Sequence record: NC_061442.1 | Strand: one strand, 5' to 3' | Length of the DNA stretch: 64,000 nt | Shown here: positions 41,358 through 59,730 of the stretch, in pieces | Layout: every line of letters starts with the position of its first letter | Position numbering within the stretch: position 1 is the first letter of the stretch | Translations under genes and position numbers: made by a program | Notes under the pieces: generated by a model | Seen by the model: only the letters and a program-made list of their open reading frames with translations | The model's database searches: none | Told to the model about the DNA's origin: nothing

Positions 41358-41369
41358 CTTTGTGGTCTT

Positions 41370-41445: not shown

Positions 41446-41499
41446 GAGCGCACTACCCTAGTACGCTGTACAAAGTAAAACAATCAACAGGAGGCTGTT

Positions 41500-41859: not shown

Positions 41860-41915
41860 TCTGCATAAATCTGGACAAAACGACGGTTGTCTCAAATAGC
41901 TGCCTGAACTATACT
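41858..41915 (+). promoter_or_regulatory. Class-A phage promoter
   Basis: aatctgcataaatctGGacaaaac; TATACT at 41910 (37 nt from GG). Confidence 0.75.
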
Positions 41916-41919
41916 ATAT

Positions 41920-42095
41920 AGACAGCGAGACAACGTTCTCTCTGAATGCCTTTGTTATGCTTTAGTCGTGTGTTTTCTATTTTCCCGGGCACACGGCTCT
42001 TTTTAGAGTGACTTCACTGAGGTTGCTTTAAAAAGAGTTCGATACTCTTTGAGCGCGTCGGGCTTTACGCGGTTTCCGCCTTACGTGCTCTCATG
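41920..42095 (+). ncRNA. Long structured 5' leader or candidate ncRNA
   Basis: About 200 nt non-coding, with four or more hairpins including a T-loop-like aagag-TTCGATA-ctctt. Confidence 0.4.
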
Positions 42096-42117
42096 CTAAA
42101 CCGCAAAGGAAATTGAA

Positions 42118-42825
42118 ATGCCTACTACTTCATGTCCTAAGACAGAAGACAAGTTCTCCCGTGCTCGCGCTGCTAAGAACTCTCCTGAGCGTCAGGCCGC
42201 GGCCATCAAGAAAACGCCACGAGGACCTTCCTCGGTTCGCCCTAAATCGACGGCAGATCGTGAGCCTAAGATTCGTGACGAGGAGCGTGTGTACAATCTC
42301 GTACATGCAATTCTGAGCGCGTGGAAAGCTGATGTGGGACATGCTGAAAACACGGCAGCATCTGCTGGTATCATCAAAGTGTCACGTCGTAATATTGAAG
42401 GTGCCCTGCGTGACCTCAAGAATACGCGCTTCACTAAAATCCCGACGCTCATTAACGATATCTTGACAGGCTCCGATATCTGCGCTGAGTTTGGTCGTTG
42501 GGTATACGTCGAGCACGATAGCCCTGATTGGATTTTCGTGCGTCTGCCTGAAAACAGCACACCTGTGATTCGTGCTGATGTAAGCGTAGGTAAAACGGAC
42601 GAAACGGCAACGTCCGTGACGACCTCTAGCGAAGTGCTTCTGGAAGCGTTCGAGGCCAGTGACGACGAAATTGAGATACTCGAATGTAACGATCAGGATA
42701 TTGAAGACCTCGAATCTGCTGGGATGCGCAAGCGTCTGATAGATGCGAAAATCATCAAACCGGAAGCTGCCTCGAAGCTGTCACGCAATGACTTAATGAA
42801 GCTCTGCGCGTACTACAGCGCATAA
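42118..42825 (+). CDS. Hypothetical protein: basic N-terminus, shared helical module at C-terminus
   Basis: AAGGA RBS; DIEDLESAGMRKRLIDAKIIKPEAASKLSRNDLMKLC. Confidence 0.8.
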   Translation: MPTTSCPKTEDKFSRARAAKNSPERQAAAIKKTPRGPSSVRPKSTADREPKIRDEERVYNLVHAILSAWKADVGHAENTAASAGIIKVSRRNIEGALRDLKNTRFTKIPTLINDILTGSDICAEFGRWVYVEHDSPDWIFVRLPENSTPVIRADVSVGKTDETATSVTTSSEVLLEAFEASDDEIEILECNDQDIEDLESAGMRKRLIDAKIIKPEAASKLSRNDLMKLCAYYSA

Positions 42826-42868
42826 GCAATAATAAGCAGGCAGTCTACATGCTGCCTGCTATCTGCGA

Positions 42869-42950
42869 AGTATGCAGAAAACTGGACAAAATCGTGGTTG
42901 TTATCTGACGGCCACCTATGCTATAATAGATTCAGACGCAATAGTGCGTC
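42869..42950 (+). promoter_or_regulatory. Class-A phage promoter
   Basis: gtatgcagaaaactGGacaaaat; TGcTATAAT at 42919; gacgca-atag-tgcgtc hairpin. Confidence 0.85.
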
Positions 42951-42984
42951 GCAAACAAAACACTTATACTGAGGAGTATTAATC

Positions 42985-44604
42985 ATGGCACGTATCGAAA
43001 CTAACACTAACCTGGTTGGCAAAACTATCGTCCTGCTGAACGGCACCAAAGCTAAAATCGAAGATGCAATCGCGTCTGGTTACAAAGTGAAAGGCCAGAC
43101 CAAGCGTATCGCCACTCGCTGCGTTATCAAAGAAGGCGCTCACTTTAAAGAAATCGAGCGCATGAACATGAGCCAGCTGGAAGATACAGGCGAAGGTTAC
43201 GTGAAGCTGAAAGATGCGAAAGCTGCGAAAGCGTCAACCAAGAAACCTTCTGCGAAAGAGAAGGCGCCAAAAGCAGGCAAGAAAGCCGCCCAGCCAGCGA
43301 AAGAAAAAGAACCTAAGGTTCGTCGCAAATCTTCTAAAGAGAAAGAAGACGAATATCAGGACTTGGCTCACGCTATCATCAAAGGTGGTAAACGTGCGGC
43401 GCCTGTTGAAATCGCTGAGATCGACGGCGACCTGACTGACTGCGTTGCTCAACGTCTGGTAGACGTGCTGAATAATAGCGAAGTTGCGAAGCTGTGCGCT
43501 GATAACAAAACGCCGATCGCAAACGCAATTGAAGTGACGTACGGCGCTGAGTTCGCCCCTGAGACCAACGTCATGCAGATCACGCTGAGTCTGCAATACG
43601 CTAAGCCTGTTCAAACGCTGTCACGTCCGACGCTGGAAAACGCAGAAGCTATCGCGTTACGTGCTGAGAAAATGGCGGCGCCTAAGCTGTCGATGAAACT
43701 CAAGAAAGCGATTCGTGAAGCATTCAGCCTCGAAGACGCGAATGACCTTGAGCTTGGAACTGTGTTGCTGTCTGACGGCGCTGAATTTGTTTACTTCGGC
43801 GAATCTGCGAAGCATGTCGGCAAAGCGCTGCTGTATGTTGTAGAGACCGACAAGTTCAAATCTGTGCTGGGCTCTACGCTGGGTGAGTACGAAATCCCAG
43901 ACGCAGAGGAAGAAGAGGAAGAGGAGGAAGAAGTTGAAGACGAATCCGAAGAGGAGGAAGAAGAAGACGGCGAAGAAGAAGACGGCGAAGAAGAAGACGG
44001 CGAAGAAGAAGACGGCGAAGAAGAAGACGGCGAAGAAGAAGACGGCGAAGAAGATTCTGCCGAATACGACTACGTTGCCGTGAACAAAGATCAGCTCGAT
44101 ATGGTCAACAAGAAAGTGACCGCTAAGTATCACGCTGCGCTGGCCGAACGTTTCAACACGACCGAAGAAGTTCTGATTCCGGGTCTGGTACTAACAGACG
44201 GCGAAACAACCTTCGCTTACCTGGGTTGCGATAGCAAAGGCGGTCTGCTGGTAATCGACTGTGGTGATGACGGCGAAGGCGAAGACGTGCTGATGTATAG
44301 CAAGTCTGATATCAAGTCTCTGGATGACTTCAATCCTGTGATGGGCGAAGCTGACGAAGACGGCGAAGAATCAGACGGCGGCGAAGAATCAGACGATGAA
44401 GATCTGGACGAAGAAGACGGCGAAGAAGAAGAAGAAGACGGCGAAGATGACGACTTCGACTTTGACGATGTGCCAGAAGCTGATATCGAAGATCTGACCG
44501 AAGACGAACTGCGTGACCGCGTAGTCGAAGCCGGCCTGACCACTCCGCGTAAAGCTGAGAACATGAATGAAGCTAAACTGCGCAAGCTGCTGAAAAGCGC
44601 ATAA
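42985..44604 (+). CDS. Highly acidic low-complexity protein (539 aa), paralog of 44687 gene
   Basis: GAGGAG RBS; D/E tracts; duplicated G(T/L)VL.DG..F.Y.G domain; C-terminal helical module. Confidence 0.9.
   Translation: MARIETNTNLVGKTIVLLNGTKAKIEDAIASGYKVKGQTKRIATRCVIKEGAHFKEIERMNMSQLEDTGEGYVKLKDAKAAKASTKKPSAKEKAPKAGKKAAQPAKEKEPKVRRKSSKEKEDEYQDLAHAIIKGGKRAAPVEIAEIDGDLTDCVAQRLVDVLNNSEVAKLCADNKTPIANAIEVTYGAEFAPETNVMQITLSLQYAKPVQTLSRPTLENAEAIALRAEKMAAPKLSMKLKKAIREAFSLEDANDLELGTVLLSDGAEFVYFGESAKHVGKALLYVVETDKFKSVLGSTLGEYEIPDAEEEEEEEEEVEDESEEEEEEDGEEEDGEEEDGEEEDGEEEDGEEEDGEEDSAEYDYVAVNKDQLDMVNKKVTAKYHAALAERFNTTEEVLIPGLVLTDGETTFAYLGCDSKGGLLVIDCGDDGEGEDVLMYSKSDIKSLDDFNPVMGEADEDGEESDGGEESDDEDLDEEDGEEEEEDGEDDDFDFDDVPEADIEDLTEDELRDRVVEAGLTTPRKAENMNEAKLRKLLKSA
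43957..44046 (+). repeat. Perfect tandem repeat (GAAGAAGAAGACGGC)x6 encoding (EEEDG)6
   Basis: Six identical 15-nt units. Confidence 0.95.
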
Positions 44605-44686
44605 CGAACTACCGTAACTACGAAATAGTGTGCGGCTCTTACTGGGTCGCATATTTGACAAATAAAGCTGATTGAGGAATCACACT

Positions 44687-45946
44687 ATGTCAAACGCAAA
44701 CAAAATTCTGCTTAACGCTCGTGTACGCCGTTTAGATGGGACCATTACTTACATCAACAAAGTGAACGCTAACGGCTATAGCACCGATGCGAAAGGCCCG
44801 CAGATTCCTGTGAAACGCATTGTGCTTGCAGGCAAAACGCTCAAAGAGATTGAAGCGCCGTTCGAGAGAGGCGAGTATATCATTGTACAGGGCATTGCAG
44901 TGAAACTGAACAAGCGCCAGCAACGTGAACTTGCAGACAAGACGCTGGATGAGAAAGCGCTGCGTCCTGACTTCGGGCGTCTGGCGTTCATTGACCGCGA
45001 CGACGGCAAAGCAACTGACGGTAAGAAAGTGAAGCCGAAAGCTGCGAAGAAAGAAGGCGGGTTGAAAGCGACTCGTAAGCAGAACGGCGATACACGCACA
45101 AAGAAAGAGCGTAAGGCAGAAGCTGCCGCCGCCGCTGAATCGCTCGACACAATCAAGTCAACTCCAGTTGATCGCAAGGGCGAACTGATAGCGACCATCG
45201 ACGCGACCATTGAAGACGCGACAAGCAAAGAGCGCCGTAAGTTGTTGTCTGAATCGTTCGACATGGACTGGAAAGACATTAAGAAGCACGGCGGTAAGGG
45301 TGTCGTTAAACATCTGGGCCGTAAAGCTGCGCAATCTGCCGTAAGCAAAATGCGCGCGACTGTTACGCAGGACGCATTCATTAAGCAGATGCCTGCTGAG
45401 TTGAAGCGCTTGATTCAAGATCGTCGGCTCGTACTGAACAAGCGCCAGATTGAAGCTGTGCTCTCTGCGCTTGGGCTTGATGTGAAGTTCTATAACATCG
45501 CCATGCAGACGTTGCTTGGCAATCTGTCGCTGGCTGTAGACGACACGCTGGCTGACGACAAAGCAGATAAGAAAGTGAAGAAGCTGAAAAAGCATAAAGC
45601 CTCTAAGCCGCAGTATCTGTCAGAGAAAGACCAGCAACGTCGTATGAAGAAAATGAAAGTGAAGCTGCTGGCTCCTACTGAGAAAGGCATGAAGAAAGCC
45701 AAAGCGAAATTGAAGCAGGCGAAAGTTACGCTTGCCGACAAGCTGGGCATCTCGCCGAAAGAAATCAAACGCGGTCTGATTGCATACCGTCCTAACGGCG
45801 TTGATTACATGTTTGTTGCCAGTGATGCTCGCGGCCCAATCTTCATCGACAAAGACGGTGACCCGTGCGTGTATACTTACGAGAATCTCGAATCGACATT
45901 CGACTTCCGTCTGACTCAACCTTCTGAACTGGACGCTACTGTATGA
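44687..45946 (+). CDS. Lys-rich basic protein, paralog of 42985 gene
   Basis: GAGGA RBS before ATG 44687; shares N- and C-terminal domains with the 42985 protein. Confidence 0.85.
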   Translation: MSNANKILLNARVRRLDGTITYINKVNANGYSTDAKGPQIPVKRIVLAGKTLKEIEAPFERGEYIIVQGIAVKLNKRQQRELADKTLDEKALRPDFGRLAFIDRDDGKATDGKKVKPKAAKKEGGLKATRKQNGDTRTKKERKAEAAAAAESLDTIKSTPVDRKGELIATIDATIEDATSKERRKLLSESFDMDWKDIKKHGGKGVVKHLGRKAAQSAVSKMRATVTQDAFIKQMPAELKRLIQDRRLVLNKRQIEAVLSALGLDVKFYNIAMQTLLGNLSLAVDDTLADDKADKKVKKLKKHKASKPQYLSEKDQQRRMKKMKVKLLAPTEKGMKKAKAKLKQAKVTLADKLGISPKEIKRGLIAYRPNGVDYMFVASDARGPIFIDKDGDPCVYTYENLESTFDFRLTQPSELDATV

Positions 45947-46326
45947 CCAACAATGAGATCATCCTGACTGGTGTTTTCGCTCAACTGTATTCGCGGCTAG
46001 TAATGGCCGCTATACAGCGCGTCCATGTATACTACTCTGATCTCGCTCCTGTGGTGTTTGGTGTGCAGTTCACTCGCGTAGGGAAAGCGCAGTACAAAGC
46101 ACTGGAGGCGCTCATTGCCGAGACGATGCGCCTCGATATTCAAAACGGCAGGCCACCACTTGCGGCCTTATACGTGTCACGCGCAAACGACACCAAGAAA
46201 CCTACCCAGTCATTCTTCAATGAGTATCTCAAATTGACTGGCAAATATCTTTCTGACGATGAATGGTTGATGCTCGTTGAACATGTGTGGAAACAATATA
46301 CACCAGACCTTCGGGAGCCATCATGA
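45943..46326 (+). CDS. Putative winged-helix DNA-binding protein
   Basis: LVMAA...VYYSDLA...GRPPLAALYV...P...FF pattern. Confidence 0.6.
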   Translation: MTNNEIILTGVFAQLYSRLVMAAIQRVHVYYSDLAPVVFGVQFTRVGKAQYKALEALIAETMRLDIQNGRPPLAALYVSRANDTKKPTQSFFNEYLKLTGKYLSDDEWLMLVEHVWKQYTPDLREPS

Positions 46327-46784
46327 AAAAGTCAAAAGTTGTAATCAGTCGCGGTGGGTATCGACCCGTCTCGCCGGAAGAGGCCAAGAAGTTGGTTGTT
46401 GAAATGCTGCTTGCTTCAATCGGCGTTAACCCAACGATTATGAGCCAGCAGATGTTGCTGAACATTGCGAACTACAATTACCTCACGTCTATCGCAGACA
46501 CGGGTAAGGCAAATACAGCGAACCAGATAGTTCTACATAAAACTGTAAAAGAACTTAATGCGTTCTGTAGATTGCACAAGATTCCTCTGGGCTTACTAAT
46601 TATGCCCCATACATCGGCGAGCGATTACTCCGGTGACGAGGTTGTAGCGATTCCCTGGGAGTCTGTGCGCAAGAATGCACCGAGCCAGTCCGCTGTCAAC
46701 TCCCTGTTCCAAACAGTCGAAGCTGATGGCTATCCGCAGTTTGTGACTGATGCGAAAACAGTAGAGGACTACAATGTTTTATGA
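46323..46784 (+). CDS. Hypothetical protein
   Basis: GGGAG RBS, ATGA overlap. Confidence 0.75.
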   Translation: MKKSKVVISRGGYRPVSPEEAKKLVVEMLLASIGVNPTIMSQQMLLNIANYNYLTSIADTGKANTANQIVLHKTVKELNAFCRLHKIPLGLLIMPHTSASDYSGDEVVAIPWESVRKNAPSQSAVNSLFQTVEADGYPQFVTDAKTVEDYNVL

Positions 46785-48054
46785 TCACGTATTCAGCCAT
46801 GACGAGAAGCAACTTCTCTTGTCTGTAGCTGAGTCTAAATATCTGGTGCGGCTTGATTGCCCTGAGTATTTGAAGAAATCAAAACACTCGATTGAAATTC
46901 GTCATACAGTGACCAACCGTGGCGAACAACGTCGAAGCGGTGTTATCAATACAACGTTTGTACCGCGTATTCATGCCTCAACTGTGCAGCGCCTGTTACG
47001 TGAGATTCGTGACAACGCAACTATCAGTTCGGCTAACAGCCTTGCCTCGTTATTTGAACTTGGGCTTGGCGTACCGAAGCAACGTGATATCGCAACGTAC
47101 TTGCACGACTACTCTCGGGAGAATGACAAGAAGGGCGTTGGTATCAAGTACATCCGCAAACTGATTAACGAGTATCACCGCAAGCACCGTCATAGTTTTG
47201 CTGGCAGTCGCTGGATGATGCCTGCTGCGTATACAGCGAACATGCTGAACATGCAGTCTTTCATTCATCTGAAAGAAAACGGCTACAGCAAGAAAGTGAA
47301 AGTGCCTGACGGTCTGCCTGTTGTTCTGATCTATCAGAATACGAATCACGCCGAAGCTGAGTTCTCTATGTGTGACGCCTTCGCTATTAGCCCTCTGGGT
47401 TATCCGATGCCGTTCGCCCAGATTGCGATGCGCCCTGAGTTCAAAGCTGCGCCGAAGACCTTTCAATCTAAAGCGCTGCGTGGGCAAGGCATGTATAGCA
47501 TGATCATGGGTATCGTTCACTGGGACAAAGGTGACGCACTGACGAACATACGCGAACTGAACGCCATTGACGACGAGCCGTACCTGACGTTGTTGTGTGA
47601 CGAGCAATACGCAGATCGTCGTTCGCCTGAGTATCAGAAGCTGCTGGACAAACGTGCTGAGTTTGCTGAACAGCGGCATGAGTGGGCAGAAGTGATTGCG
47701 AAGTATGGCAACACAACTCGCACACTCAAGCCCAAGCAGTTAGAGCGACTGGAGCAGGCAGAGAACTTCTTCAAAGAACGCAAAACGTTTATGGACGAGT
47801 TTGATAAGTTCGAGAAGAAAGAGAACCATCAGGCTGCTAAGAAGTTTGCAGTAGCCAGTGCGAAGTTCGCTGCCGTTGATTGTGGAACTATTGCTGACCG
47901 TTCGACGTATATGTCAGTAGCGTCGGGCCTCGACAAAGTTAATAAGATTCTCACTAAGTGGGGATTCACCACGGTTGATACTGTTAATAGTAGTTTGAAG
48001 AAGTCTATCCTTACATTCGACCCAACAACCGCTACTCGCGTGTGGTCACTGTAA
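46774..48054 (+). CDS. Hypothetical protein (426 aa)
   Basis: GAGGA RBS; long ORF. Confidence 0.8.
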   Translation: MFYDHVFSHDEKQLLLSVAESKYLVRLDCPEYLKKSKHSIEIRHTVTNRGEQRRSGVINTTFVPRIHASTVQRLLREIRDNATISSANSLASLFELGLGVPKQRDIATYLHDYSRENDKKGVGIKYIRKLINEYHRKHRHSFAGSRWMMPAAYTANMLNMQSFIHLKENGYSKKVKVPDGLPVVLIYQNTNHAEAEFSMCDAFAISPLGYPMPFAQIAMRPEFKAAPKTFQSKALRGQGMYSMIMGIVHWDKGDALTNIRELNAIDDEPYLTLLCDEQYADRRSPEYQKLLDKRAEFAEQRHEWAEVIAKYGNTTRTLKPKQLERLEQAENFFKERKTFMDEFDKFEKKENHQAAKKFAVASAKFAAVDCGTIADRSTYMSVASGLDKVNKILTKWGFTTVDTVNSSLKKSILTFDPTTATRVWSL

Positions 48055-48078
48055 ACCTTTTATCTGAGGAGATAACGT

Positions 48079-51075: not shown

Positions 51076-51087
51076 TATCGTCTAAAC

Positions 51088-51117
51088 GAGTGGCTCGAAA
51101 GGGCCACTCACTTTCTT
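51088..51117 (+). terminator. Intrinsic terminator
   Basis: gagtggctc-gaaa-gggccactc followed by ctttctt. Confidence 0.7.
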
Positions 51118-51131
51118 GGGGATCTGTAAAC

Positions 51132-51953
51132 ATGACACAAGAAGTAGACCACGGCGCAAACATCATTAAGATGGTAAGTGACCGTGACGCTAAAATCCGT
51201 GAACTATCTGCTGACCTGACAGTGACTTCTGGAGGCAAAGCAGACGTGGAAGCGGAACTGCGTGAACTGTCTCTCGATCATCTGGCACTCAAAATCAAGA
51301 TGCGTAGCCGTGAGCGCGAACACGCCTCGGAGATTGCGCTGCGTGATGAACGCATTAAAGAAGTTGTTGGGTTCTGCAACGAACAAACAGTTGAAGTGAA
51401 GAACATCCGTGCTGAACTCGAATCTGTAAAACAAAAGAGTGAACCGGCTGCTGCACTGCCATTCGTTCTGCAATTGATAATGTCTGCTGGTGTCGCGCAC
51501 TACCATGCGATTATCGCACAATGCGCTATCGCTACTGTCAACAAAGCAACAAATAAAGTTGCCCGTGAACTGCGCGAAATTTATGATATTGATAATGTAG
51601 TGAAGCATCCTTCACTCTATCGTGTCGCTGTCCGACTGTGTACTCAGCTCGGTGTTTCGCCACCATCTCGCACCGAACTATCGGCCGAGATTAAAGAGTA
51701 TGTGGCCCAGAACATCGACCTGTACGTGAAAGACCCGCAGTACGCTACATCTGAATCCGCCTTGCGCCAGATTATCGCGGCGAAAAACAATGCCGCACAT
51801 TATGGCTCTTATGGCCGTGACGTGTGCCGAATGTTCGACTGGCTCCCTGCACTAGCTGCTGGCCTGGACGACATTGAAGATGACTACAACGATTTGGTGG
51901 AACAATCTGTCTATCAAGTCTGTCGTAATCTGATTAACGATAGCTTTTCATAA
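51132..51953 (+). CDS. Coiled-coil hypothetical protein
   Basis: ORF track; start moved to ATG 51132. Confidence 0.75.
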   Translation: MTQEVDHGANIIKMVSDRDAKIRELSADLTVTSGGKADVEAELRELSLDHLALKIKMRSREREHASEIALRDERIKEVVGFCNEQTVEVKNIRAELESVKQKSEPAAALPFVLQLIMSAGVAHYHAIIAQCAIATVNKATNKVARELREIYDIDNVVKHPSLYRVAVRLCTQLGVSPPSRTELSAEIKEYVAQNIDLYVKDPQYATSESALRQIIAAKNNAAHYGSYGRDVCRMFDWLPALAAGLDDIEDDYNDLVEQSVYQVCRNLINDSFS

Positions 51954-51996
51954 TCTGTAAAAGTTACCTGTAATCGAATCTGTAAACACTAATTGA
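51952..51996 (+). promoter_or_regulatory. Class-B motif cluster (AATCTGTAAA x2)
   Basis: aatctgtaaaagtt at 51952 and aatctgtaaacactaattgaag at 51977. Confidence 0.55.
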
Positions 51997-52046
51997 AGTT
52001 CGAACCGAGCGACAAGCTCACACTTATAAAATCCCGGAGCATTACA

Positions 52047-52601
52047 ATGGCTAAAGCAATTAAGTCCTCTAACCTGTCACCTACCCTGATCTCTCGTATT
52101 CAGAAAAAGTCTGGCTCCATCGGTACTTCTAAAGCTAAGCCTTCTGAACTGCCGCACGACATTCTGATCGAAACGGTGCAGGCTGTTGAGCTGATTGGCT
52201 TCATTACTGACCGCACCGAAAACAGCGTCACCATTCGTCACAAACGTGGTCATGGTTCTTCTGCGCAAGTTGTTTCTACCTTCGGCCCGAATCAAACTCT
52301 GTCTGTGCTGGGCGAAGCTGGCGGTCACGGTAGCGTAATCGCTCTGATCAACGCGCCGGTTCGTGAGTACAAGGGCTTCACTATCAAATACAAAGGCGCG
52401 ACCATCGTTGCTACCTCTGTTGAGACTGGCGAAGTGATTGAAGTGAACACCGCACTGCCTGGCTTCACTGTTCGCGCAACCGTGAACGAAACTGCTGCTG
52501 CTAAAAAGTACGGCACGCCTGCTCCTACCAAAGCTAAGAAGCTGGACAAAGGCGACAAAGCTGGTAAGACTGCGAAAGTGGCAAAGAAAGTAAAAAAGTA
52601 A
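52047..52601 (+). CDS. Hypothetical protein with Lys-rich termini
   Basis: GGAG RBS before ATG 52047; strong codon bias. Confidence 0.8.
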   Translation: MAKAIKSSNLSPTLISRIQKKSGSIGTSKAKPSELPHDILIETVQAVELIGFITDRTENSVTIRHKRGHGSSAQVVSTFGPNQTLSVLGEAGGHGSVIALINAPVREYKGFTIKYKGATIVATSVETGEVIEVNTALPGFTVRATVNETAAAKKYGTPAPTKAKKLDKGDKAGKTAKVAKKVKK

Positions 52602-52628
52602 GTAAGTCTGACGAAGACTTCTAACTTT

Positions 52629-52710
52629 CGAAATCTGTAAACATTAAGTATGCAGCGAGATAAAAATGTTTCGCTGCCTGTCTCTCGAAATCTGTAAATC
52701 TTAATTGAAG
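52629..52710 (+). promoter_or_regulatory. Class-B motif cluster (CGAAATCTGTAAA x2) flanking a hairpin
   Basis: Copies at 52629 and 52686; gcagcga/tcgctgc stem between them. Confidence 0.55.
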
Positions 52711-52745
52711 CAACGTCGCTTCTAATCAAACAGGAAATAAATATC

Positions 52746-53531
52746 ATGGCTAAAGCTAAAGCAACCGCAAACACCGCAGCAACCGTTCTGGCTAAAATGC
52801 TGGGCGTCGTAGTCGAAAACGCCAGCGCTGCTGACATTGCAGCAATTCTGAAAGAAGCCGGCCTGACTGTTGTTGGCGGTAAAGTTGTTAAAGCTGAAAA
52901 AGGCGGTAAAGCTGCTAAAGGCAAAAAGGCCAAAGCACCTACCGTTGCTGAAATCGTCGCTGCTGTTAAGGACGAAGAAGAACTGGACATCTCCGGCGTA
53001 AGCGAAGATGACCTGCGCGCCGCAGTTGTTAAGGCCAAGCTGTCTACCGCTAAGAAAGCGAAAGCGCTGGACGAAGATGAACTGCGCGAACTGCTGAACG
53101 ATAACCTGGGCGGCGAGTCCGAAGAGGACGAAGACGAAGAAGAAGAGGACGACGAAGACGAGGACGAAGACGACTCGGACGACGAAGATGAAGACGGCGA
53201 CGACGAAGACGAAGACGACGAAGACTCTGATGATGAAGAAGAGGACGACGAAGACGACGAAGACGGCGACGATGAAGACGAAGATGAAGACGAAGATGAA
53301 GACGAGGACGATGAAGACGAACTCGACCTCGACTCACTCGACAAGAAAGAGCTGTTAGCTCTCGTCCTGGAACACAAGCTGGCCCCGGCCAAGAAAGCTA
53401 AGAAAATGGACGAAGATGAACTGCGCGAACTCTGCGAAGAACACTTCGGTGGTGAAGACGACGAAGACGAAGATGAAGACGAAGACGACGAAGACTTCGA
53501 CGATGAAGACGAAGACGAAGACGACGAATAA
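52746..53531 (+). CDS. Highly acidic protein with two copies of the shared helical module
   Basis: AKKAKALDEDELRELL / AKKAKKMDEDELRELC separated by a ~70-residue D/E tract. Confidence 0.9.
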   Translation: MAKAKATANTAATVLAKMLGVVVENASAADIAAILKEAGLTVVGGKVVKAEKGGKAAKGKKAKAPTVAEIVAAVKDEEELDISGVSEDDLRAAVVKAKLSTAKKAKALDEDELRELLNDNLGGESEEDEDEEEEDDEDEDEDDSDDEDEDGDDEDEDDEDSDDEEEDDEDDEDGDDEDEDEDEDEDEDDEDELDLDSLDKKELLALVLEHKLAPAKKAKKMDEDELRELCEEHFGGEDDEDEDEDEDDEDFDDEDEDEDDE

Positions 53532-53751
53532 GTCCTGATCTGAACCGGCGGCCCCTCTAGTTCTAACGAATGAGCGAGGGGCAAATAATCGAAAAAAAAA
53601 TATCTAGATTATTTTCGTAAAAAGTTTTAAAATTCCTGTTGTTGTATGTTGAACATAATAATGTATGACTACAGGAACACAAACCTGAACAAATTTATCT
53701 TTTCATCCAGCGGTGAAAACGCCGCATCAAATATAAAGTAAGGAATATCGT

Positions 53752-54279
53752 ATGTCTAAGAAAGCAATCAGCGGCCTGAACAAAGAAATCAAAGCCCTGG
53801 AAAAATCTGAAAAAGCTCTGACCAAAACTTCTGCTGAAATCACCAAGCAGGCTGAATCCATCGCTGAACGTCGTGCCGGTCTGACTGCCCAGGTTGAAGC
53901 GTTGCAGAACGACGGTGCTGCTCCGGCCAAAGCTGCTAAGGCGCCGAAAGCTGGCAAAGCAGAGAAAGCTGCTAAGCCTGCCAAAGCTGAAAAAGCTGGC
54001 AAGAAAGCGAAAGCTGAAAAGGCTGAGAAGCCTGCTAAAGCTAAGAAAGCGAAAGCAGAGAAAGCTGAGAAGCCTGCTAAAGCTGACAAAAAAGCGAAAG
54101 CTGCCAAAGCTGAAAAGCCAGCTAAAGCAGAAAAGTCTGGTAAAAAAGCCAAAGCTGAAAAAGCTGCTAAGCCTGCCAAAGCTGAAAAAGCTGGCAAGAA
54201 AGTGAAAGCGGACAAAGCTGCTAAGGCCGGTAAGAAAAGCAAAAAAGAAGCCGAAGACTTCGACTTCGATATGGAATAA
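53752..54279 (+). CDS. Histone H1-like / AlgP-like Lys-Ala repeat protein
   Basis: N-terminal coiled coil, repeated KAEKA(A/E)KPAKA units, acidic C-tail EDFDFDME. Confidence 0.85.
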   Translation: MSKKAISGLNKEIKALEKSEKALTKTSAEITKQAESIAERRAGLTAQVEALQNDGAAPAKAAKAPKAGKAEKAAKPAKAEKAGKKAKAEKAEKPAKAKKAKAEKAEKPAKADKKAKAAKAEKPAKAEKSGKKAKAEKAAKPAKAEKAGKKVKADKAAKAGKKSKKEAEDFDFDME

Positions 54280-54310
54280 GCAAGCGCCGCGCAATAGCGG
54301 TACTTGATCT

Positions 54311-54343
54311 AAAAGGGCAGCGCTGACGAGCGTTTGCCCTTTT
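54311..54343 (+). terminator. Intrinsic terminator
   Basis: aaaagggca...tgccctttt. Confidence 0.8.
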
Positions 54344-54376
54344 GTCATATCTGTCTCAAATTTTGAGGTAAACCGA

Positions 54377-54871
54377 ATGTCTGCTGAACATTTGCTTAAC
54401 GATGACCTACCGGACGATACTCTCTCCACGAAAGTACCCACCTCTCCTGAAAAGCCCAACTACTACGCGTTAATGACTATGCGACTTGAAGCTGGCGCTC
54501 GTCTTGCTCGTGCTCTGAAAACCCTGAAAGATGCCAACGTGTTTGGTGATGATAATACCGTGAACGGTAGTCTCATGTTGACTGAGGCTCTGAAGGTTGC
54601 AGAAGCTAACTGGGCACACATCTGCATGGGATACACGCCTGTAAAAGATTCTAATGACCGAGAGTCTCTGCGTGATAACCTTCCTGCCTGCATCGAAGCA
54701 TTCCGTGTTGTCGTAATGGAACATGCTCAACGCGAAGCATTGGAGCGTGAGTGCAAACTCATGATTAGCCACGCAGAAGGTTTCAAAATTCTGACCCAGC
54801 CTCAAACAATACAGATTGAGCCACTACACTTCTGCGATGGAACCTGCGACCATGACACAAAAACTGTCTGA
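54377..54871 (+). CDS. Hypothetical protein
   Basis: GAGG RBS. Confidence 0.75.
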   Translation: MSAEHLLNDDLPDDTLSTKVPTSPEKPNYYALMTMRLEAGARLARALKTLKDANVFGDDNTVNGSLMLTEALKVAEANWAHICMGYTPVKDSNDRESLRDNLPACIEAFRVVVMEHAQREALERECKLMISHAEGFKILTQPQTIQIEPLHFCDGTCDHDTKTV

Positions 54872-55382
54872 GCAAATCAACCGCTATTTTAATCTCATGG
54901 AGAAAATCCGTGAGCAACTGTTCCGTGTGTTGAACGTGTCCGATCGCTACCTGTGCATCGTGAGCTTTAACACCCAGCATCAGGCAATGCAGTGCGACCT
55001 AGTTAGTCGTGAGAGCCTGCTGCCCGCCAAGCTACTTGAAGGTCTTAGTGGTCAGGAGCTTGTAGTGTACGGCACCATTACTGCCCAGATTGAGAAATGG
55101 GTAGCAGACGGTATGAGCGACGACTTCCCGATTACGCAAGACGCCGATACCTACGCGCAGTATCGCAAGCTGGTGGACCCTGAGCAAGAGCCTGCTATCT
55201 CTGACGCTAACTTGGCAGAGCATGTTGCCTCTCTACCTAAGTCAGATGCCCTGAAATACGTTGACCCTCTGAGCAAGTACGAGCTTGCGATTATCTGCAA
55301 AGCATGGGGACTTGAACAAGATGCCAGCGAGACTGTTATGCTATCTCTCGTCAAGGGCTATATTCTGCGCCGTGACTCGTAG
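54852..55382 (+). CDS. Hypothetical protein with C-terminal HeH-like segment
   Basis: LSKYELAIICKAWGL; start moved to 54852. Confidence 0.7.
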   Translation: MTQKLSEQINRYFNLMEKIREQLFRVLNVSDRYLCIVSFNTQHQAMQCDLVSRESLLPAKLLEGLSGQELVVYGTITAQIEKWVADGMSDDFPITQDADTYAQYRKLVDPEQEPAISDANLAEHVASLPKSDALKYVDPLSKYELAIICKAWGLEQDASETVMLSLVKGYILRRDS

Positions 55383-55387
55383 CTTGA

Positions 55388-55466
55388 ACTCTGCAAATAG
55401 TTGGACAGAACGTGGGTAGCGTCTAATACTTTAGTATGATATAATAGCCGTAGGACAAGTAGTGTC
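55388..55466 (+). promoter_or_regulatory. Class-A phage promoter
   Basis: actctgcaaatagttGGacagaac; TGaTATAAT at 55437; ggaca..tgtct hairpin. Confidence 0.85.
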
Positions 55467-55515
55467 TGCATATGCTAATATCGAGTAGTAATGCTACTCA
55501 TAGGAGATCACGAAA

Positions 55516-57543
55516 ATGGCCAAAGCGCCGAAAGCTGCCAAAGTAAAAAAGAAAACGGGTGATGGTTCCCAAGAAGGTTTCGTAATTCACGAAGGCTTAT
55601 CGGGTATCAGAGAAAACCCCGGCATGTACATGGGTCAACGTGGCGAAGACATGGCGTATCGCGCGGTCAAAGAACCTGTGGACAATGACTACGATGAATA
55701 CATCGCTGGACGTAACAAGTTGATCGAAGTGGTCATTGATTACGACAACGACCTGAACATCGTAGCTGACCAAGCTGGCGGCATCCCTACCGACTTCAAG
55801 AAGTTGAAAGACGGTACGAAAGAAACGATCATGACCGCAGCATTTAGCCGCGTTCATGCGGGTGGTAAATTTAACGATCAGGCGTATAAGACTTCTGCTG
55901 GTACGCACGGTGTTGGCGTCGCGGCACTGAACGCCATATCCAGTCAGTTGCGCGTGTGGTCAATGTACAAAGGCGGCTGCGTCTATCAGATGTGGCAGTG
56001 TGGTGAAGTCAAGTCAGGCAAAGACCCTAAGAAAGTCAAGACCATCGACAAAGACGTTATGAGCCTGCTGCGTGATAAGAAACACAGCAAGTACGGTACA
56101 GTGGTTGCGTGGACGCTCGACCAGACAGTTGTGTCTGCTGACGTTATGCGCGGTAAGAAGCTGCCGAAGAACTATCGACACGCAGCGCCGAACCCTGCTC
56201 AACTGGGCGAGTGGTTGCGTAACATGTCGATGCTCAACCCAGGCCTTGAGATTCGTTTGACGTTGATCAAGAAGGGCAAGCGCAAAGAGTTCACGTTCCA
56301 CAACAAGAAAGACCTGAACTTCGTTGTGAAGACGATGTGCGAAGAACGTGAGCTGGGCACTGTCGGTAAGCCGTTCATCTTCAAGTCAGATAATATCACT
56401 GCTGCACTTGTCTGGACCGATCACGCCGACACTGATAACTTCCTGACGTTCGTTAACACAAGCCCGACAGTTGATGGCGGGTGGCACGTTGTTGGTTTCC
56501 GTGACGCGCTGTTTGATGCTATCAAGCCGTTCATGAAAGAATCGAAGGGCAAAGGCAAGAAGAAGCAGAACTTCAAACAGGAAGATTTGCTTATCGGTCT
56601 GACTGGTATGTTCGACTGGCGTATGCACGGTGCGCAGTATACGTCACAGGTAAAAGACAAGCTGGCCAGCCGTGTAGAGAAAGACGTATACGCAGAACTG
56701 AACAAGGCGTTTGTCGAATACTTCAAGACGAACAAGAAAGTTGCTACGACGATCATCAAACGCGCCGAAGCAATGAACAAGGGACGTGAAGAACTCAGCG
56801 CCGTCGTCAAGTCTATGGCTGACACGAAGAAGAAGCTGAAAGGTAACGCACTCCCTGCGGACCTGATCACTGCAAACAAGTGCAAGCCTCATGAGCGTGA
56901 ACTGATTGTTGTGGAAGGGGACTCTGCTGGTGGTACTGCACAGGATGCGCGTAACCCTGACTATCAGGAAGTTATGCTCGCTGGCGGTAAGCCGCTGAAC
57001 GGACTGAAAGCAAGTCTGGCTGATGTGCTCAAGCACAAAGAAGTGCAGGGCCTGTTAGTGAGTATGGGTGCTGACTTGAAATCGCTCGACCCGAAAGCAG
57101 ACGCACCGATTCTCAGTACGAAGAATCTGCGTATCGGTAATTTGCTGCTGCTGATGGATGCTGATGCTGACGGCTTCCACATCGCAACGTTGTTCCTAGG
57201 TGTTATCTATCGCCTGCTGCCTGACATGTTCCGTGAAGGGCGTGTGTGGATCGTCGATGCGCCTCTGTATAACGTCGTACACAAAGGCAAGCACTACGGT
57301 GGCATGACGTTTGAAGAATGCCGATCGCTCGCACCATCGTCTGTGAAAGACAAAGACATTGTACGTGCTAAAGGTTGGGGTGAAGTCGAGCCTGACGTGC
57401 TGGAAGCTATCGCATTCGATCCGAAGACGCGTCGTGTCATTCGCGTGAATCCATTCGAAAGCGTAGAGCAGGAACGTTTCTTCCGTGGTGTTCTCGCAGA
57501 AGATGCCGTGCACCGTCGTCGCTTACTGGGTCTGGAGAGCTAA
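55516..57543 (+). CDS. gyrB: Type IIA DNA topoisomerase, ATPase/TOPRIM subunit (GyrB/ParE family)
   Basis: IRENPGMYMG, KEPVDN, HAGGKF, GTHGVG, VEGDSAGG, MDADADG.HI. Confidence 0.95.
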   Translation: MAKAPKAAKVKKKTGDGSQEGFVIHEGLSGIRENPGMYMGQRGEDMAYRAVKEPVDNDYDEYIAGRNKLIEVVIDYDNDLNIVADQAGGIPTDFKKLKDGTKETIMTAAFSRVHAGGKFNDQAYKTSAGTHGVGVAALNAISSQLRVWSMYKGGCVYQMWQCGEVKSGKDPKKVKTIDKDVMSLLRDKKHSKYGTVVAWTLDQTVVSADVMRGKKLPKNYRHAAPNPAQLGEWLRNMSMLNPGLEIRLTLIKKGKRKEFTFHNKKDLNFVVKTMCEERELGTVGKPFIFKSDNITAALVWTDHADTDNFLTFVNTSPTVDGGWHVVGFRDALFDAIKPFMKESKGKGKKKQNFKQEDLLIGLTGMFDWRMHGAQYTSQVKDKLASRVEKDVYAELNKAFVEYFKTNKKVATTIIKRAEAMNKGREELSAVVKSMADTKKKLKGNALPADLITANKCKPHERELIVVEGDSAGGTAQDARNPDYQEVMLAGGKPLNGLKASLADVLKHKEVQGLLVSMGADLKSLDPKADAPILSTKNLRIGNLLLLMDADADGFHIATLFLGVIYRLLPDMFREGRVWIVDAPLYNVVHKGKHYGGMTFEECRSLAPSSVKDKDIVRAKGWGEVEPDVLEAIAFDPKTRRVIRVNPFESVEQERFFRGVLAEDAVHRRRLLGLES

Positions 57544-57544
57544 C

Positions 57545-57799
57545 ATGTTCAACATTGCAAAGTTGCCTGACGGGACGCAGGTTCGTTTTCTCGATATGCC
57601 TGACGTGCAGTACCCACCAATGACTGACGAGCAACGTAGCCAGTGTGAGGCGCTGTATGGTAAAGCGCGTGAGCTTGCGAAGAACGTTACCGTGTCTGGG
57701 TTCACTGTAGTTGACGGACTACCGAACGAACGTGTGCAGATTCAAATGCGCCGCACAACTCTCGATAAGATTAATGCGATTGCCAAAGGAGAACAGTAA
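57545..57799 (+). CDS. Small hypothetical protein between the topoisomerase genes
   Basis: GGAG RBS before ATG 57545; TAATG overlap with the next gene. Confidence 0.7.
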
Positions 57800-59457
57800 T
57801 GGCAATTACGCCGAAGAAAGTGAAAGTCAAAAAGGTTAAGCCGACCGCTGTGGCGAAAGCCGCTAAGCCTGCAAAACTCAAAGCGAAAGCCGTGTCAGTC
57901 GATGATATCAAAAAGAAGAAGAAGAAAAGCACCGACGTTGCTGCATCGAACGCTGTTGGTACTTCGCTTTATCCCCTGCTTGGGCAGGACCCAAAGCTGA
58001 TTCACGATGAAGGCCTGTCTGACTATACTCGACGGGCGCTGTCTCACTATGGCGCATACGTTGTTGAAGACCGTGCTATCGCTGACTATCGTGACGGCCT
58101 CAAGCCTGTGCACCGCGCACTGCTGTGGTCGCTGTCTGACTTGGGCTTACGACCAAGCGCGGCGTTCAAGAAGTCGGCTCGTACTGTAGGCGACACAATC
58201 GGTAAGTATCACCCACACGGTGACGCTGCCTGCTACGGTGCGATGGTTACGATTGCGAATACAGTACCTCCTGCTGTAGCGGGTCAAGGTAACTGGGGCA
58301 ACCCTGTGTCTGCTGCTGCTGCGCAACGTTATACCGAAGCGCGTATGTCAAAGTTCACAGGCTCGTTCCTGCTTGACCCTGACTATCTCGAAGTTGTGCC
58401 TCGTGTGCCGAACTTCTCGAATGACCTTGAGATTCCTCTGTACTTGCCAGCGTTGCTTCCGTACATGCTATTCAATAGCTCGGTACCAGCGCCAGCATAT
58501 GGTGTGAAGTGCGGTAACCCACCGTTCAGCTTTAGCTCCGTCAGCAAAGTTGTGTGTGACATGCTCAACGGCGTTCAATACGATGCGAAGAAGCTCGCTA
58601 AGACGCTCAAGATCGTCCACACGTACGGCTGTGAAGACGTGACGACTGACGAGGAGATGCTGCAACTGATCTCTACAGGCAAGGGCAAAGTCACGTACCA
58701 GCCGCTAATGCACGTCGATGAAAAGAACAAGCTGGTCATCATCCAGACCTATGTACCTGCTGGTATGTCGAAGCTCGACGCCATCACGAAGAAGCTGGAG
58801 AAGATTGGCGAGTGGAACGGCGTTGTGTCTGCGCGTAACGCAAGCGGTAAGAAGAACAAGCACTCTGGTCCGTATGGCGCGGCATTCGAAATCAAATGCC
58901 GAGGCAGCGAAGACCTGTTGTATGAGACTGCGAAGAAGGTCATGCGGGAAGTGACTTCGAGCGTCAACTATACGCTGGGTGTAACCGTTCGTCGTGCTGA
59001 TGCTTCAAACAAGTTCATGTACCTCGACTACCTGAAGTATTTCAAAGCGTGGATTGCGTATCGCATTAAGCTCGAAACTGCGATGCTCCAGAACAAGCTG
59101 ACGAAAGCAGAGAAGGCATTGCACTTACAGCAAGTCTACCTATGGGCTGTAGACAACATGGACAAGCTGCTCAAAGTGTTGCCGAAAGTGTTGGTCGCTG
59201 CTGACCCTGACGCGATGCTTGCGAAGCTGTGTAAGATTCCTGTTGAAGATGCGAAGATCATCCTCGACCGTCAGGTACGTAAACTGGCGAAACTGGAACG
59301 CAGTGGTCTGCTCGCTAAGATTAAAGAAATCAAGGCAGAGATTGCTGGATATAAAGCAGGTCTGAAAGAGCCGGGCAAATACGCGGCAGAAGGTACTGCG
59401 GCGAAAGTTAAGGCGTATATGAAATCGCCTGACGACAAGATGCCTGTCAATCTGTAA
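57799..59457 (+). CDS. gyrA: Type IIA DNA topoisomerase, breakage-reunion subunit (GyrA/ParC family, no CTD)
   Basis: [37 protein letters not shown] (catalytic Tyr). Confidence 0.95.
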
Positions 59458-59473
59458 TAGATCTGTAAATACA

Positions 59474-59530
59474 ACTCAGCATATTCTAGGACGAAACGCG
59501 GTTGTGTCTGTATGTCATTTATGTTACAAT
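59474..59530 (+). promoter_or_regulatory. Class-A phage promoter
   Basis: actcagcatattctaGGacgaaac; TGtTACAAT at 59522. Confidence 0.75.
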
Positions 59531-59730
59531 GACGTGTCTGTGGGTAGCTGTCTGTTTGGGAGATAGACAGCTATTCGAACTCATAACAGGAGGGTACGTT
59601 AGCGCAGCAAATATATTCACTCAGGAAAAATAAACGAGCCTAAAAAGGCCAACCAGCCTGACTGTAGACTATAACTACGGCAGAGCAATACTATAATCGA
59701 CCCATGCAATGCTAATATGTTAGAGCAACA

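Follow-up and report, generated by a model that had tools for sequence, protein, structure and literature searches.

The window analysed here comprises the last 64 kb of the genome of Erwinia phage pEa_SNUABM_35 (Alexandravirus, 262 kb; NC_061442.1), a jumbo phage whose host is the fire-blight bacterium. Within it lies a 16-gene block, gp316–gp331, which encodes strongly acidic proteins, strongly basic proteins and both subunits of a type II topoisomerase (Table 1). Every open reading frame used in a first-pass annotation of the block was present on the plus strand as one of these RefSeq genes, and the compositions described there proved real when charges were recomputed. Long minus-strand reading frames over the D/E tracts (e.g. 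52325–53584) were rejected as antisense artefacts of GAA/GAC repeats.

Table 1. Genes and sequence features in and around the block, with positions in the 64-kb window.
Feature	Position	Strand	Description
gp309	37518–39164		Possible further copy of the shared helical module
gp313	40507–41166	+	219 aa, 26% D+E, net −31; just upstream of the block
gp315	41500–41859	+	119 aa, 28% D+E, net −26; additional acidic protein
Sigma-70-like promoter-like site	41873–41917	+	Upstream of gp316; the genome has five such sites
gp316	42118–42825	+	235 aa; N-part basic, Pro-rich
Shared module in gp316	42673–42822	+	Residues 186–235, C-terminal
Sigma-70-like promoter-like site	42884–42927	+	Upstream of gp317; second hexamer TG-extended
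gp317	42985–44604	+	539 aa, 27% D+E, net −81
gp318	44687–45946	+	419 aa, pI 9.9, net +34
gp319, gp320, gp321	45943–48054	+	Conserved proteins; gp321 426 aa, pI 9.3
gp322	48079–51075	+	998 aa, 24% D+E, net −193
Terminator-like hairpin	51088–51109	+	3′ of gp322
ATCTGTAAA, one copy	51122–51130	+	Replication-class promoter-like motif directly before gp323
gp323	51132–51953	+	273 aa, coiled-coil-like
ATCTGTAAA, two in tandem	51953–51986	+	Upstream of gp324; position kept in six other lineages
gp324	52047–52601	+	184 aa, pI 10.1
ATCTGTAAA, two in tandem	52633–52698	+	Upstream of gp325; tandem arrangement kept in six other lineages
gp325	52746–53531	+	261 aa, 46% D+E, net −91
Conserved inverted repeat/hairpin	53635–53675	+	Upstream of gp326; overlaps a sigma-70-like promoter-like site
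gp326	53752–54279	+	175 aa, 30% K+R
gp327, gp328	54377–55382	+	Small, mildly acidic
Sigma-70-like promoter-like site	55403–55445	+	Upstream of the topoisomerase genes
gp329	55516–57543	+	Type IIA topoisomerase large subunit: GyrB-type ATPase, Toprim and C-terminal domains; Lys-rich N-end
gp330	57545–57799	+	84 aa; between both topoisomerase genes
gp331	57799–59457	+	Type IIA topoisomerase A subunit (GyrA/ParC-type); Lys-rich N-tail of ~50 residues
gp334	61536–62402	+	Match to PHROG family "DNA topoisomerase"

Acidic, basic and Lys-tailed proteins

In a ranking of our own 322 gene calls, the block accounts for three of the genome's four most acidic proteins: gp322, gp325 and gp317. Compared with shuffled sequences, their charge segregation occupied ranks 2–4 of 250 (z 11–17). 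These proteins had been described as extremely acidic and disordered. Their extreme acidity stands, but full disorder does not, because the AlphaFold model of gp322 has a pLDDT of at least 70 for 396 of its 998 residues and falls below 50 in the D/E tracts only. Its five tracts (residues ~250–265, 325–355, 431–471, 621–661 and 980–998) are separated by helical modules and an alpha/beta domain near the C-terminus, all modelled with confidence.

At its N-terminus, gp317 has a small domain that also occurs in gp318. The rest of the protein comprises a Lys-rich linker, folded parts that are conserved, and two D/E tracts, one of which is encoded by a perfect 15-nt repeat of 6.5 copies. Its C-end is a helical module of ~45 residues. 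This shared module, already recognised in the first-pass annotation, also forms the C-end of gp316 and occurs twice in gp325, where an N-terminal helical part and a Lys-rich stretch are followed by module, D/E tract, module and D/E tail. Upstream of the block as originally delimited lie two more acidic proteins, gp313 and gp315, for which family searches gave no family match, and the possible module copy in gp309.

The basic character of gp318, gp324 and gp326 was likewise upheld. Residues 2–58 of gp318 are related to residues 4–60 of gp317 (hhalign probability 89%). The family to which gp324 belongs comprises at least 63 clusters. In gp324, an all-beta core (residues 37–146, pLDDT 83–95) lies between a basic N-part and a Lys-rich C-tail. 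In many of its relatives this tail ends in an acidic/aromatic tip, which is lacking in gp324 of pEa_SNUABM_35. In gp326, an N-terminal coiled coil is followed by Lys/Ala/Glu/Pro repeats of 9–18 residues and by a short acidic/aromatic tip that is kept across genera. The label "H1-like" applies to gp326 in composition only; neither a histone fold nor an H1 globular domain was found. Domain and fold searches with the charged block proteins returned no DNA-binding, histone or chaperone fold and no match to any known family or fold, and comparison of the gp322 and gp324 models with the PDB gave no significant structural neighbour.

Domain matches support the assignment of gp329 and gp331 as the two topoisomerase II subunits, and their Lys-rich N-ends, which had also been pointed out before, are kept in all relatives examined. 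Genome-wide, 9 of the 17 annotated DNA enzymes carry Lys-rich end tails, versus 11 of 300 other proteins, a class that holds many proteins of unknown function (Fisher p = 4e-8). Two unrelated large phages, BcepSauron and a Rhizobium phage, likewise have Lys-rich ends on their topoisomerase II subunits. Hence, a Lys-tailed topoisomerase is not specific to this module, and the tails may simply increase DNA affinity without any scaffold. In the tail of the phage SSB, which is 150 residues long and ends in a poly-Lys run, D/E blocks alternate with K/S blocks; the alternating charge of this tail is conserved in JA29 and PaBG. Outside the stretch covered by the first-pass annotation, gp334 is possibly a third topoisomerase-associated protein.

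Conservation, regulatory motifs and codon usage

Conservation across related jumbo phages had been proposed as a check, and the block proved to be a conserved unit. Synteny of the module extends over ~57 related phages and to two distantly related metagenomic contigs. Phages of Erwinia, Dickeya and Yersinia, Pseudomonas phage PaBG and the two contigs all have the gene order gp317 ... gp324-gp325-gp326, and gp328 relatives are present in both contigs. Synteny and net charge are conserved across five genera, the contigs and PaBG, but the tract sequences are not. In every relative, the block is placed among replication genes. In PaBG, the conserved module lies elsewhere, 8–15 kb from the topoisomerase genes, so that a close link with topoisomerase II does not hold for all relatives. 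In three distant members of the gp324 family, the gene is located 1–3.5 kb upstream of the topoisomerase II genes.

The 9-mer ATCTGTAAA has 22 copies in the genome, against ~2 expected, and every copy is co-oriented with the genes. It is found upstream of the DNA polymerase, sigma-factor, methylase and ParB genes, and upstream of gp323, gp324 and gp325. The expression class of the block genes is read from such motifs, and by this measure the promoter-like motifs of gp323–gp325 are of the replication class, not the structural class. The late-type motif CTAATTT, which precedes structural and lysis genes, has no copies in the block; it does occur upstream of a gp326-like gene in one distant contig. 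The hairpin before gp326 shows compensatory changes in three pairs among five phages.

The reference set for codon adaptation (CAI) consisted of the capsid, sheath and tube genes of the phage itself. Among the 295 other genes, gp326 ranked first, gp324 second, gp325 fifth, gp317 sixth and gp322 seventh, and these ranks held without the D/E/K codons. The codon usage typical of highly expressed genes, reported earlier for several block members, is therefore confirmed for these five. They are the most charged members of the block and equal the capsid and sheath genes in codon adaptation, which suggests that their products are very abundant.

Comparison with known systems

HbhA of Mycobacterium tuberculosis binds DNA non-specifically, bends and loops it, and stimulates topoisomerase (PMC10665949). 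The layout of gp326 is alike, with a coiled coil at the N-terminus and Lys/Ala/Pro-type repeats after it, and the protein is encoded beside topoisomerase genes. However, no sequence homology between the two was detected, and gp326, a putative DNA binder encoded by a phage, ends in a conserved acidic/aromatic tip and has many Glu residues in its repeats. The putative pairing of strongly basic low-complexity proteins with strongly acidic ones resembles that of H1 and prothymosin alpha, which form a very tight yet disordered polyelectrolyte complex (PMC7661507). Yet, gp326 has no winged-helix globular domain, and gp325, gp322 and gp317 are far larger than prothymosin alpha, contain folded modules and share no homology with it.

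The tips of gp326 and of many gp324-family proteins are reminiscent of bacterial SSB, whose C-terminal acidic/aromatic motif serves protein docking (PMC7293020). E. coli SSB also condenses via its disordered linker (PMC7584906), to which the charge-block tail of the phage SSB may be compared. In contrast to bacterial SSB, the core of gp324 is not recognisably an OB fold, the gp324 copy studied here is tipless, and the phage SSB terminates in poly-Lys instead of an acidic tip. As in T4-type type IIA topoisomerases, GyrB-type and GyrA/ParC-type domains are on separate subunits, and the PHROG match of gp334 adds to this likeness. The Lys-rich extensions on both subunits differ from the T4 type; their presence in other large phages indicates a widespread variant.

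Like the Chimalliviridae with their chimallin-based phage nucleus, Alexandra-like phages are jumbo phages with a large replicating genome to organise and protect. In contrast, they serve as a non-chimallin comparison group in the literature, and they encode a sigma factor but no multisubunit RNA polymerase. None of the 30 window proteins scanned was shell-like, in agreement with the earlier statement that no chimallin is seen in the window. Some eukaryotic DNA viruses form membrane-less replication compartments from abundant DNA-binding proteins whose charged regions are disordered (adenovirus DBP, vaccinia H5, herpesvirus ICP4). Their hosts are different, and they share no homology with the phage module, for which a comparable role would be a prediction from sequence features.

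Possible roles of the charged proteins

The first-pass annotation proposed a phage chromatin or condensate system. Our results make this reading plausible and support it in part: the conserved unit, conserved charges, codon adaptation, replication-type motifs and place of the phage group among non-chimallin phages agree with it, but a DNA-binding, histone or chaperone fold and a topoisomerase tail specific to the system do not emerge. Our preferred, tentative explanation, to which we assign a probability of roughly one in three, regards the block as a replication-phase module for DNA organisation that does not encode parts of the virion. The basic proteins gp326, gp324 and gp318 would bind replicating phage DNA regardless of sequence, coating or bridging it. 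The polyanionic gp325, gp322 and gp317, with D/E tracts interrupted by small folded modules, would act as counter-polyelectrolytes that maintain the solubility and exchange of the basic proteins and Lys-tailed enzymes, and their repeated helical module would tether both. Lys-rich end tails would concentrate DNA enzymes locally in the DNA-protein phase, namely both topoisomerase subunits, SSB, the clamp loader, the UvsX-like recombinase, the family A DNA polymerase, the ParB-like protein and a C5 methylase. The acidic/aromatic tips of the basic proteins could be docking peptides or self-inhibitory tails. Physically, this might result in a coated nucleoid, in a condensate that is truly liquid, or in no more than transient complexes.

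An alternative explanation, which we consider rather unlikely, might be that the genes form no integrated system and are neighbours with separate jobs (topoisomerase II accessory factors, a second SSB-like protein, solubility tails), their charge reflecting a lineage-wide habit of low-complexity expansion. Charged low-complexity tails are indeed found genome-wide (SSB, clamp loader, UvsX, head-module proteins), D/E tracts grow by recent repeat slippage, as in the 15-nt array of gp317, and the position of the module relative to the topoisomerase differs in PaBG. However, over large evolutionary distances the gp324-gp325-gp326 order persists and each net charge retains its sign and size, while the tract sequences change. 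Moreover, one helical module is common to three proteins, the N-domains of gp317 and gp318 are paralogous parts of oppositely charged proteins, and the regulatory motifs are shared and conserved.

Acidic DNA mimics such as Ocr, ArdA and Arn are a known phage strategy. With this precedent, the abundant polyanions might instead be decoys that resemble DNA and titrate away nucleoid proteins of the host, restriction enzymes or other DNA-binding defences, with the basic proteins coating phage DNA or compacting the host nucleoid, so that replication is protected or cleared but not organised. The extreme negative charge and apparent high abundance would suit this role, as would the sigma-70-like sites before gp316, gp317 and gp326, which suggest expression by the host polymerase from early on, and the lack, according to the literature, of a chimallin shell, which would require other protection. 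Yet this take-over or anti-defence role seems improbable: there were no matches to DNA-mimic families in Pfam, NCBIfam or PHROG, and known mimics are compact and folded, without D/E tracts of 30–140 residues. The module is linked to replication genes, not to early host-shutoff genes, and its retention across very different hosts (Erwinia, Pseudomonas and those of the metagenomic relatives) argues for a phage-side target.

Least probable is that the proteins are head-internal, scaffold-like or packed with the genome as DNA condensers. In favour of this, capsid-like codon adaptation could reflect structural stoichiometry, an acidic tract occurs in the probable head-assembly ORF "ATPase" between the capsid and protease genes (102907–104937 of the record, net −141), a very basic late protein, gp182 (+67), is also encoded, and one distant contig has CTAATTT before its gp326-like gene. 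Against it, the block itself is without this motif, gp323–gp325 share their upstream motif with polymerase and sigma-factor genes, and replication genes surround the block in every relative. Furthermore, none of the PaBG counterparts (gp124–gp127 and gp131) appears among the 14 major virion proteins of that phage, which comprise Coomassie-visible bands only (PMC7412058 Table 1). This absence speaks against purely virion structural components, the case that would have contradicted the original proposal, and the replication-class motifs point the same way.

For the replication-phase module that we favour, our analysis adds synteny, the 9-mer class, the PaBG virion comparison, the Lys-tail enrichment and the charge-block tail of SSB to what had been noted before. 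In this jumbo phage, a conserved, codon-optimised cluster of extremely acidic and basic orphan proteins adjoins the topoisomerase genes.

Genome setting and conservation of the block

The plus-strand block gp316-gp331 of Erwinia phage pEa_SNUABM_35 is conserved as a unit, its proteins have complementary and conserved charges and share sequence modules, its codon adaptation is at the level of the structural genes, and its regulatory motifs are of the replication class. The best-supported reading is tentative, with a probability of roughly one in three: the block may be a replication-phase, DNA-organising polyelectrolyte module.

The window is 100% identical to the phage record (NC_061442.1; 261,719 bp; genus Alexandravirus), where it spans positions 197,720-261,719. 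The genome consists of two arms. The minus-strand arm carries most structural genes and several replication genes. The plus-strand arm carries the sigma factor, the single-strand binding protein (SSB), the UvsX-like recombinase, the block with all of its genes in this orientation, the topoisomerase genes and, on the far side of the record's origin, the terminase and portal genes. The phage group is that of the PaBG or 'Lupandier' jumbo myoviruses (PMC7412058). Callisto, a jumbo phage that does not form a nucleus, was set aside as a relative of this group, its paper making no mention of PaBG or Baikalvirus. Alexandra served as a comparison phage in a study of chimallin phages, beside phages stated to lack chimallin. 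In agreement with the first-pass annotation, a scan of 30 window proteins detected no chimallin. Multisubunit RNA polymerases were likewise lacking in these proteins, and the genome annotation contains neither, listing a sigma factor without a multisubunit RNA polymerase.

Among phages of Erwinia, Dickeya and Yersinia, ~57 records show the block in synteny, and it recurs in Pseudomonas phage PaBG and in two distant metagenomic contigs, which bears out its conservation across related jumbo phages. Net charge per orthologue is nearly constant over five genera (gp322, -174 to -201; gp325, -89 to -100; gp326, +27 to +30; gp324, +13 to +16), while the charged tracts themselves vary. Each of three distant members of the gp324 family is followed, 1-3.5 kb downstream, by topoisomerase II genes. 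The two metagenomic contigs contain the full set: besides large acidic proteins and topoisomerase subunits with Lys tails, they encode a poly-D/E protein like gp325 and a protein like gp326 that bears an acidic/aromatic tip. Because low-complexity sequence is masked, gene calling in these contigs was partly incomplete for the module; the counterparts of gp325 and gp326 are in uncalled, partly N-masked stretches, and protein databases cover such low-complexity genes poorly.

PaBG might seem to lack the module, since adjacency to the topoisomerase genes is absent, yet a profile search located it 8-15 kb away, between these genes and the sigma, SSB and UvsX genes. It is complete and in unchanged order: a gp317-like protein (-60), a protein like the C-terminal part of gp322, a gp324-like protein, a poly-D/E protein of 150 residues (66% D+E), and one of 202 residues (34% K+R) that bears an acidic/aromatic tip. 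The annotation of the poly-D/E protein, PaBG_00125, gives a likeness to a eukaryotic ribosome assembly factor, which is most probably an artefact of low complexity.

Coordinates of features in the phage record, the window and the comparison sequences
Feature	Reference	Position	Detail
C5 cytosine DNA methylase gp043	record	27554-29683	internal Hint and intein-splicing Pfam matches; Lys-rich C-end
ORF annotated 'ATPase'	record	102907-104937	net -141; single ~140-residue D/E tract; no Pfam match
gp182	record	155738-156418	226 aa; 33% K+R; net +67
SSB gp238	record	195036-196295	just upstream of window
UvsX-like recombinase gp239	record	196354-198888	844 aa; 3' part at window 1-1169
Perfect tandem array in first D/E tract of gp317	window	43957-44054	15-nt unit x 6.5
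ATCTGTAAA, example sites	window	51122, 51953, 51978, 52633, 52690, 59461	
Inverted repeat/hairpin upstream of gp326	window	53635-53675	overlaps sigma-70-like site
Uncalled stretch, metagenomic contig	L011	10570-11820	
Uncalled stretch, metagenomic contig	L012	11403-12326	
PaBG_00125	L013	31210-31662	poly-D/E

Charged proteins and the shared module

The charges and sizes reported for the block proteins by the first-pass annotation agree with our values. Genome-wide, gp322 (-193), gp325 (-91) and gp317 (-81) are three of the four most acidic proteins; the other, annotated 'ATPase', is encoded in the cluster of head-assembly genes. When charge segregation was compared with shuffled sequences, gp325, gp322 and gp317 took ranks 2-4 of 250, followed by the SSB. 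The D/E tracts are encoded by GAA/GAC repeat arrays, and the long antisense ORFs over them are artefacts. Part of the first tract of gp317 is a perfect tandem array, which points to recent expansion.

These acidic proteins had been described as disordered, which holds for the D/E tracts but not for the whole of gp322. In its AlphaFold model (mean pLDDT 61), low-confidence D/E tracts separate confident helical modules and a moderately confident C-terminal alpha/beta domain. Foldseek found no significant neighbour of this model in the PDB, gp317, gp322 and gp325 had no matches in Pfam, NCBIfam or PDB, and word-based homologue searches with gp322 and gp325 returned close relatives only. A ribosomal-stalk-like identity of gp325 was set aside, as it has no Pfam match. 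The acidic proteins also lack a family or fold match to the acidic histone chaperones prothymosin alpha, nucleoplasmin and NAP1; they do have long D/E tracts of conserved charge, which may bind basic partners.

The shared helical module noticed earlier comprises ~45 residues. It forms the C-ends of gp316 and gp317, occurs twice in gp325, and is kept in orthologues from four other genera; gp309 may contain a further copy. Single copies had no Pfam match even at E up to 10. The module profile found nothing significant among PDB chains, the only sequences returned being LAP2 LEM-like chains (E 1.3 and 4.5), at most a hint of a possible helix-extended-helix motif of the SAP, LEM or Rho N-terminal type. 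Another shared segment links gp317 and gp318, oppositely charged neighbours that have their N-terminal 57 residues in common (hhalign probability 89%).

Among the basic proteins, gp326 (30% K+R) contains tandem Lys/Ala/Glu/Pro repeats of 9-18 residues. Its earlier designation as H1-like holds for composition only: it has a Lys/Ala/Pro-rich low-complexity tail like that of linker histone H1 but not the globular winged-helix domain, with no match to Pfam Linker_histone. Its sole Pfam match is a weak one to a coiled-coil DUF (residues 5-54, E 0.003, below the cut-off), and there was no noteworthy NCBIfam or PDB sequence match. Its N-part is a predicted coiled coil, with the Lys-rich repeat tail behind it; PaBG and the metagenomic relatives keep this layout, which resembles that of the HbhA-type nucleoid-associated proteins with Lys/Pro/Ala tails.

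The model of gp324 has a confident all-beta core and disordered basic ends. Foldseek found no significant PDB neighbour and no OB fold (best E 0.026, TM below 0.3), and a BFVD search returned uncharacterised relatives only. The idea of an OB-fold SSB was set aside for this fold mismatch. A profile search of 1.84 billion representatives placed gp324 in a family of at least 63 clusters, all unnamed, whose members combine a beta core with a basic N-part and a Lys-rich tail. This tail has an acidic tip and a hydrophobic or aromatic end residue in 31 of 60 representatives and also in many close orthologues, whereas the copy in this phage lacks them; a few relatives have long D/E tails instead of the tip.

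Sequence searches of PDB chains with gp318, gp321, gp322 and gp326 gave nothing significant. Scans of all block proteins against Pfam, NCBIfam and PHROGs returned, the topoisomerase apart, phage families of unknown function only. None of the charged proteins has a curated family, a solved structure or a fold neighbour.

Lysine-rich tails, codon usage and promoter-like motifs

The block encodes both subunits of a type IIA topoisomerase, as previously proposed. They carry the defining domains of phage enzymes with split subunits: gp329 is of the GyrB type (Pfam DNA_gyraseB, 3e-25; Toprim, 6e-9; DNA_gyraseB_C, 6e-7), and gp331 of the GyrA/ParC type (DNA_topoisoIV, 4e-57). Their Lys-rich N-tails, also noted earlier, are part of a wider pattern. 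Defined as at least 6 Lys in a terminal stretch of 25 residues (genome mean 1.8), such tails occur on 9 of 17 annotated DNA enzymes versus 11 of 300 other proteins (Fisher p = 4e-8). The nine are ParB, the C5 methylase, NAD ligase, family A polymerase, clamp loader, SSB, the UvsX-like protein and both topoisomerase subunits. Lys tails on the topoisomerase alone are not clade-specific and were rejected as a hallmark, because the control phages BcepSauron and a Rhizobium phage have similar ends on their topoisomerase subunits.

The C-terminal ~150 residues of the SSB alternate between poly-D/E and poly-K/S and finish in poly-Lys; JA29 and PaBG share this alternating design. An identical string, acidic and then poly-Lys, terminates both the SSB and the clamp loader gp206. 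JA29 and PaBG also keep the Lys-rich N-tail of UvsX, and in both the recombinase is 501 aa long. The greater length of gp239 suggests an insertion of ~340 residues, possibly an intein.

Codon usage of the highly expressed type, reported earlier for several block genes, is confirmed by codon adaptation to the phage's own capsid, sheath and tube genes. Ranked among 295 other genes, gp326 is 1st, gp324 2nd, gp325 5th, gp317 6th and gp322 7th. Without D, E and K codons, the ranks are 4, 1, 14, 8 and 7, respectively.

Two promoter-like motifs appear to divide the gene classes. The 9-mer ATCTGTAAA has 22 genomic copies versus ~2 expected, all co-oriented with genes. Copies stand 20-60 nt ahead of the start codons of the sigma factor, ParB, a DNA methylase, the family A polymerase and the small DNA polymerase gene; in the block, gp323 has the motif upstream, and gp324 and gp325 have two copies each. 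The distances of the gp324 site and the gp325 tandem pair are unchanged in Y3, Yoloswag, JA29, fHe-Yen9-02 and both metagenomic contigs. The phage's own sigma factor, gp237, is itself preceded by this motif. The second motif, CTAATTT, lies 25-45 nt upstream of structural and lysis genes and has no copy inside the block. Expression of the block in the replication class would follow from these motifs.

Sigma-70-like sites that share one type lie ahead of gp316, gp317, the topoisomerase operon and gp332. A conserved sigma-70-like site of gp326's own overlaps a hairpin, which is kept in five phages with compensatory changes in three pairs and may act as an operator or as a structured 5' RNA element. 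An Rfam scan of window 41300-60000, which includes the hairpin, found nothing.

A proposed polyelectrolyte module and its alternatives

In the proposed module, the basic proteins would coat DNA, the acidic proteins would serve as counter-ion, chaperone or scaffold, and Lys tails and acidic tips would recruit. Each element of this scheme has a precedent among HbhA (PMC10665949), H1 with prothymosin alpha (PMC7661507), SSB condensation (PMC7584906) and the replication condensates of eukaryotic DNA viruses. The condensate proposed by the first-pass annotation is conceivable but goes a step beyond the evidence.

An alternative explanation might be that these genes form no integrated system. Charged low-complexity tails on other proteins of the genome and the different position of the module in PaBG would fit this view; on the other side stand the gene order kept as far as PaBG and the constancy of the opposite charges. 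We regard this alternative as doubtful. The acidic proteins might also act as decoy or anti-defence polyanions. Their charge would suit such a role, but they consist of tracts plus modules instead of a compact mimic such as Ocr or ArdA, and the block proteins have no Pfam or PHROG match to these DNA mimics; this explanation seems unlikely. Least probable is that they are packaged or assembly proteins: codon adaptation like that of structural genes would fit, but the PaBG counterparts gp124-gp127 and gp131 are absent from 14 major virion proteins (Coomassie-visible bands only; that paper and the record agree in gene numbering, gene 118 being the sigma factor in each), and the replication-class 9-mer stands in place of the late motif. 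The GenBank entry of Y3 carries no virion label on the block proteins.

Two proteins outside the block deserve mention. In charge segregation, no protein of the phage exceeds the ORF annotated 'ATPase'. Flanked by the capsid-side gene gp137 and by gp139/prohead protease, it is probably a head scaffold and not the enzyme that its annotation names. The highest net positive charge belongs to gp182, the most basic of all proteins of the phage; it has the late-type CTAATTT upstream and codon adaptation rank 3 of 295, and is a candidate packaged DNA-binding protein.

Returning to the polyelectrolyte module, a bolder extension may be considered, although we hold it to be quite unlikely. The non-chimallin jumbo phages of this lineage might maintain a shell-less replication compartment held together by charge, with abundant polyanionic scaffolds and polycationic coaters of DNA forming a DNA-rich phase. 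Poly-Lys ends would then be address tags that partition replisome, recombination, methylation and topoisomerase enzymes into this phase. If true, such tags would do by electrostatics what nuclear import signals do in other cells.

This newly described module is made up of orphan proteins, but in general terms nucleoid-associated basic proteins, acidic chaperones and viral replication scaffolds are all familiar. The module offers concrete candidates for the shell-less organisation and protection of a replicating 260-kb genome, in the form of apparently abundant proteins, conserved throughout the lineage and without a known fold, and the Lys-rich tails on DNA enzymes across the genome suggest a testable sorting rule. 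If the charge pairing fails, these proteins remain among the most strongly codon-optimised genes in these phages. If it is true, the physics of linker histones with acidic chaperones and of viral condensates would enter phage biology.
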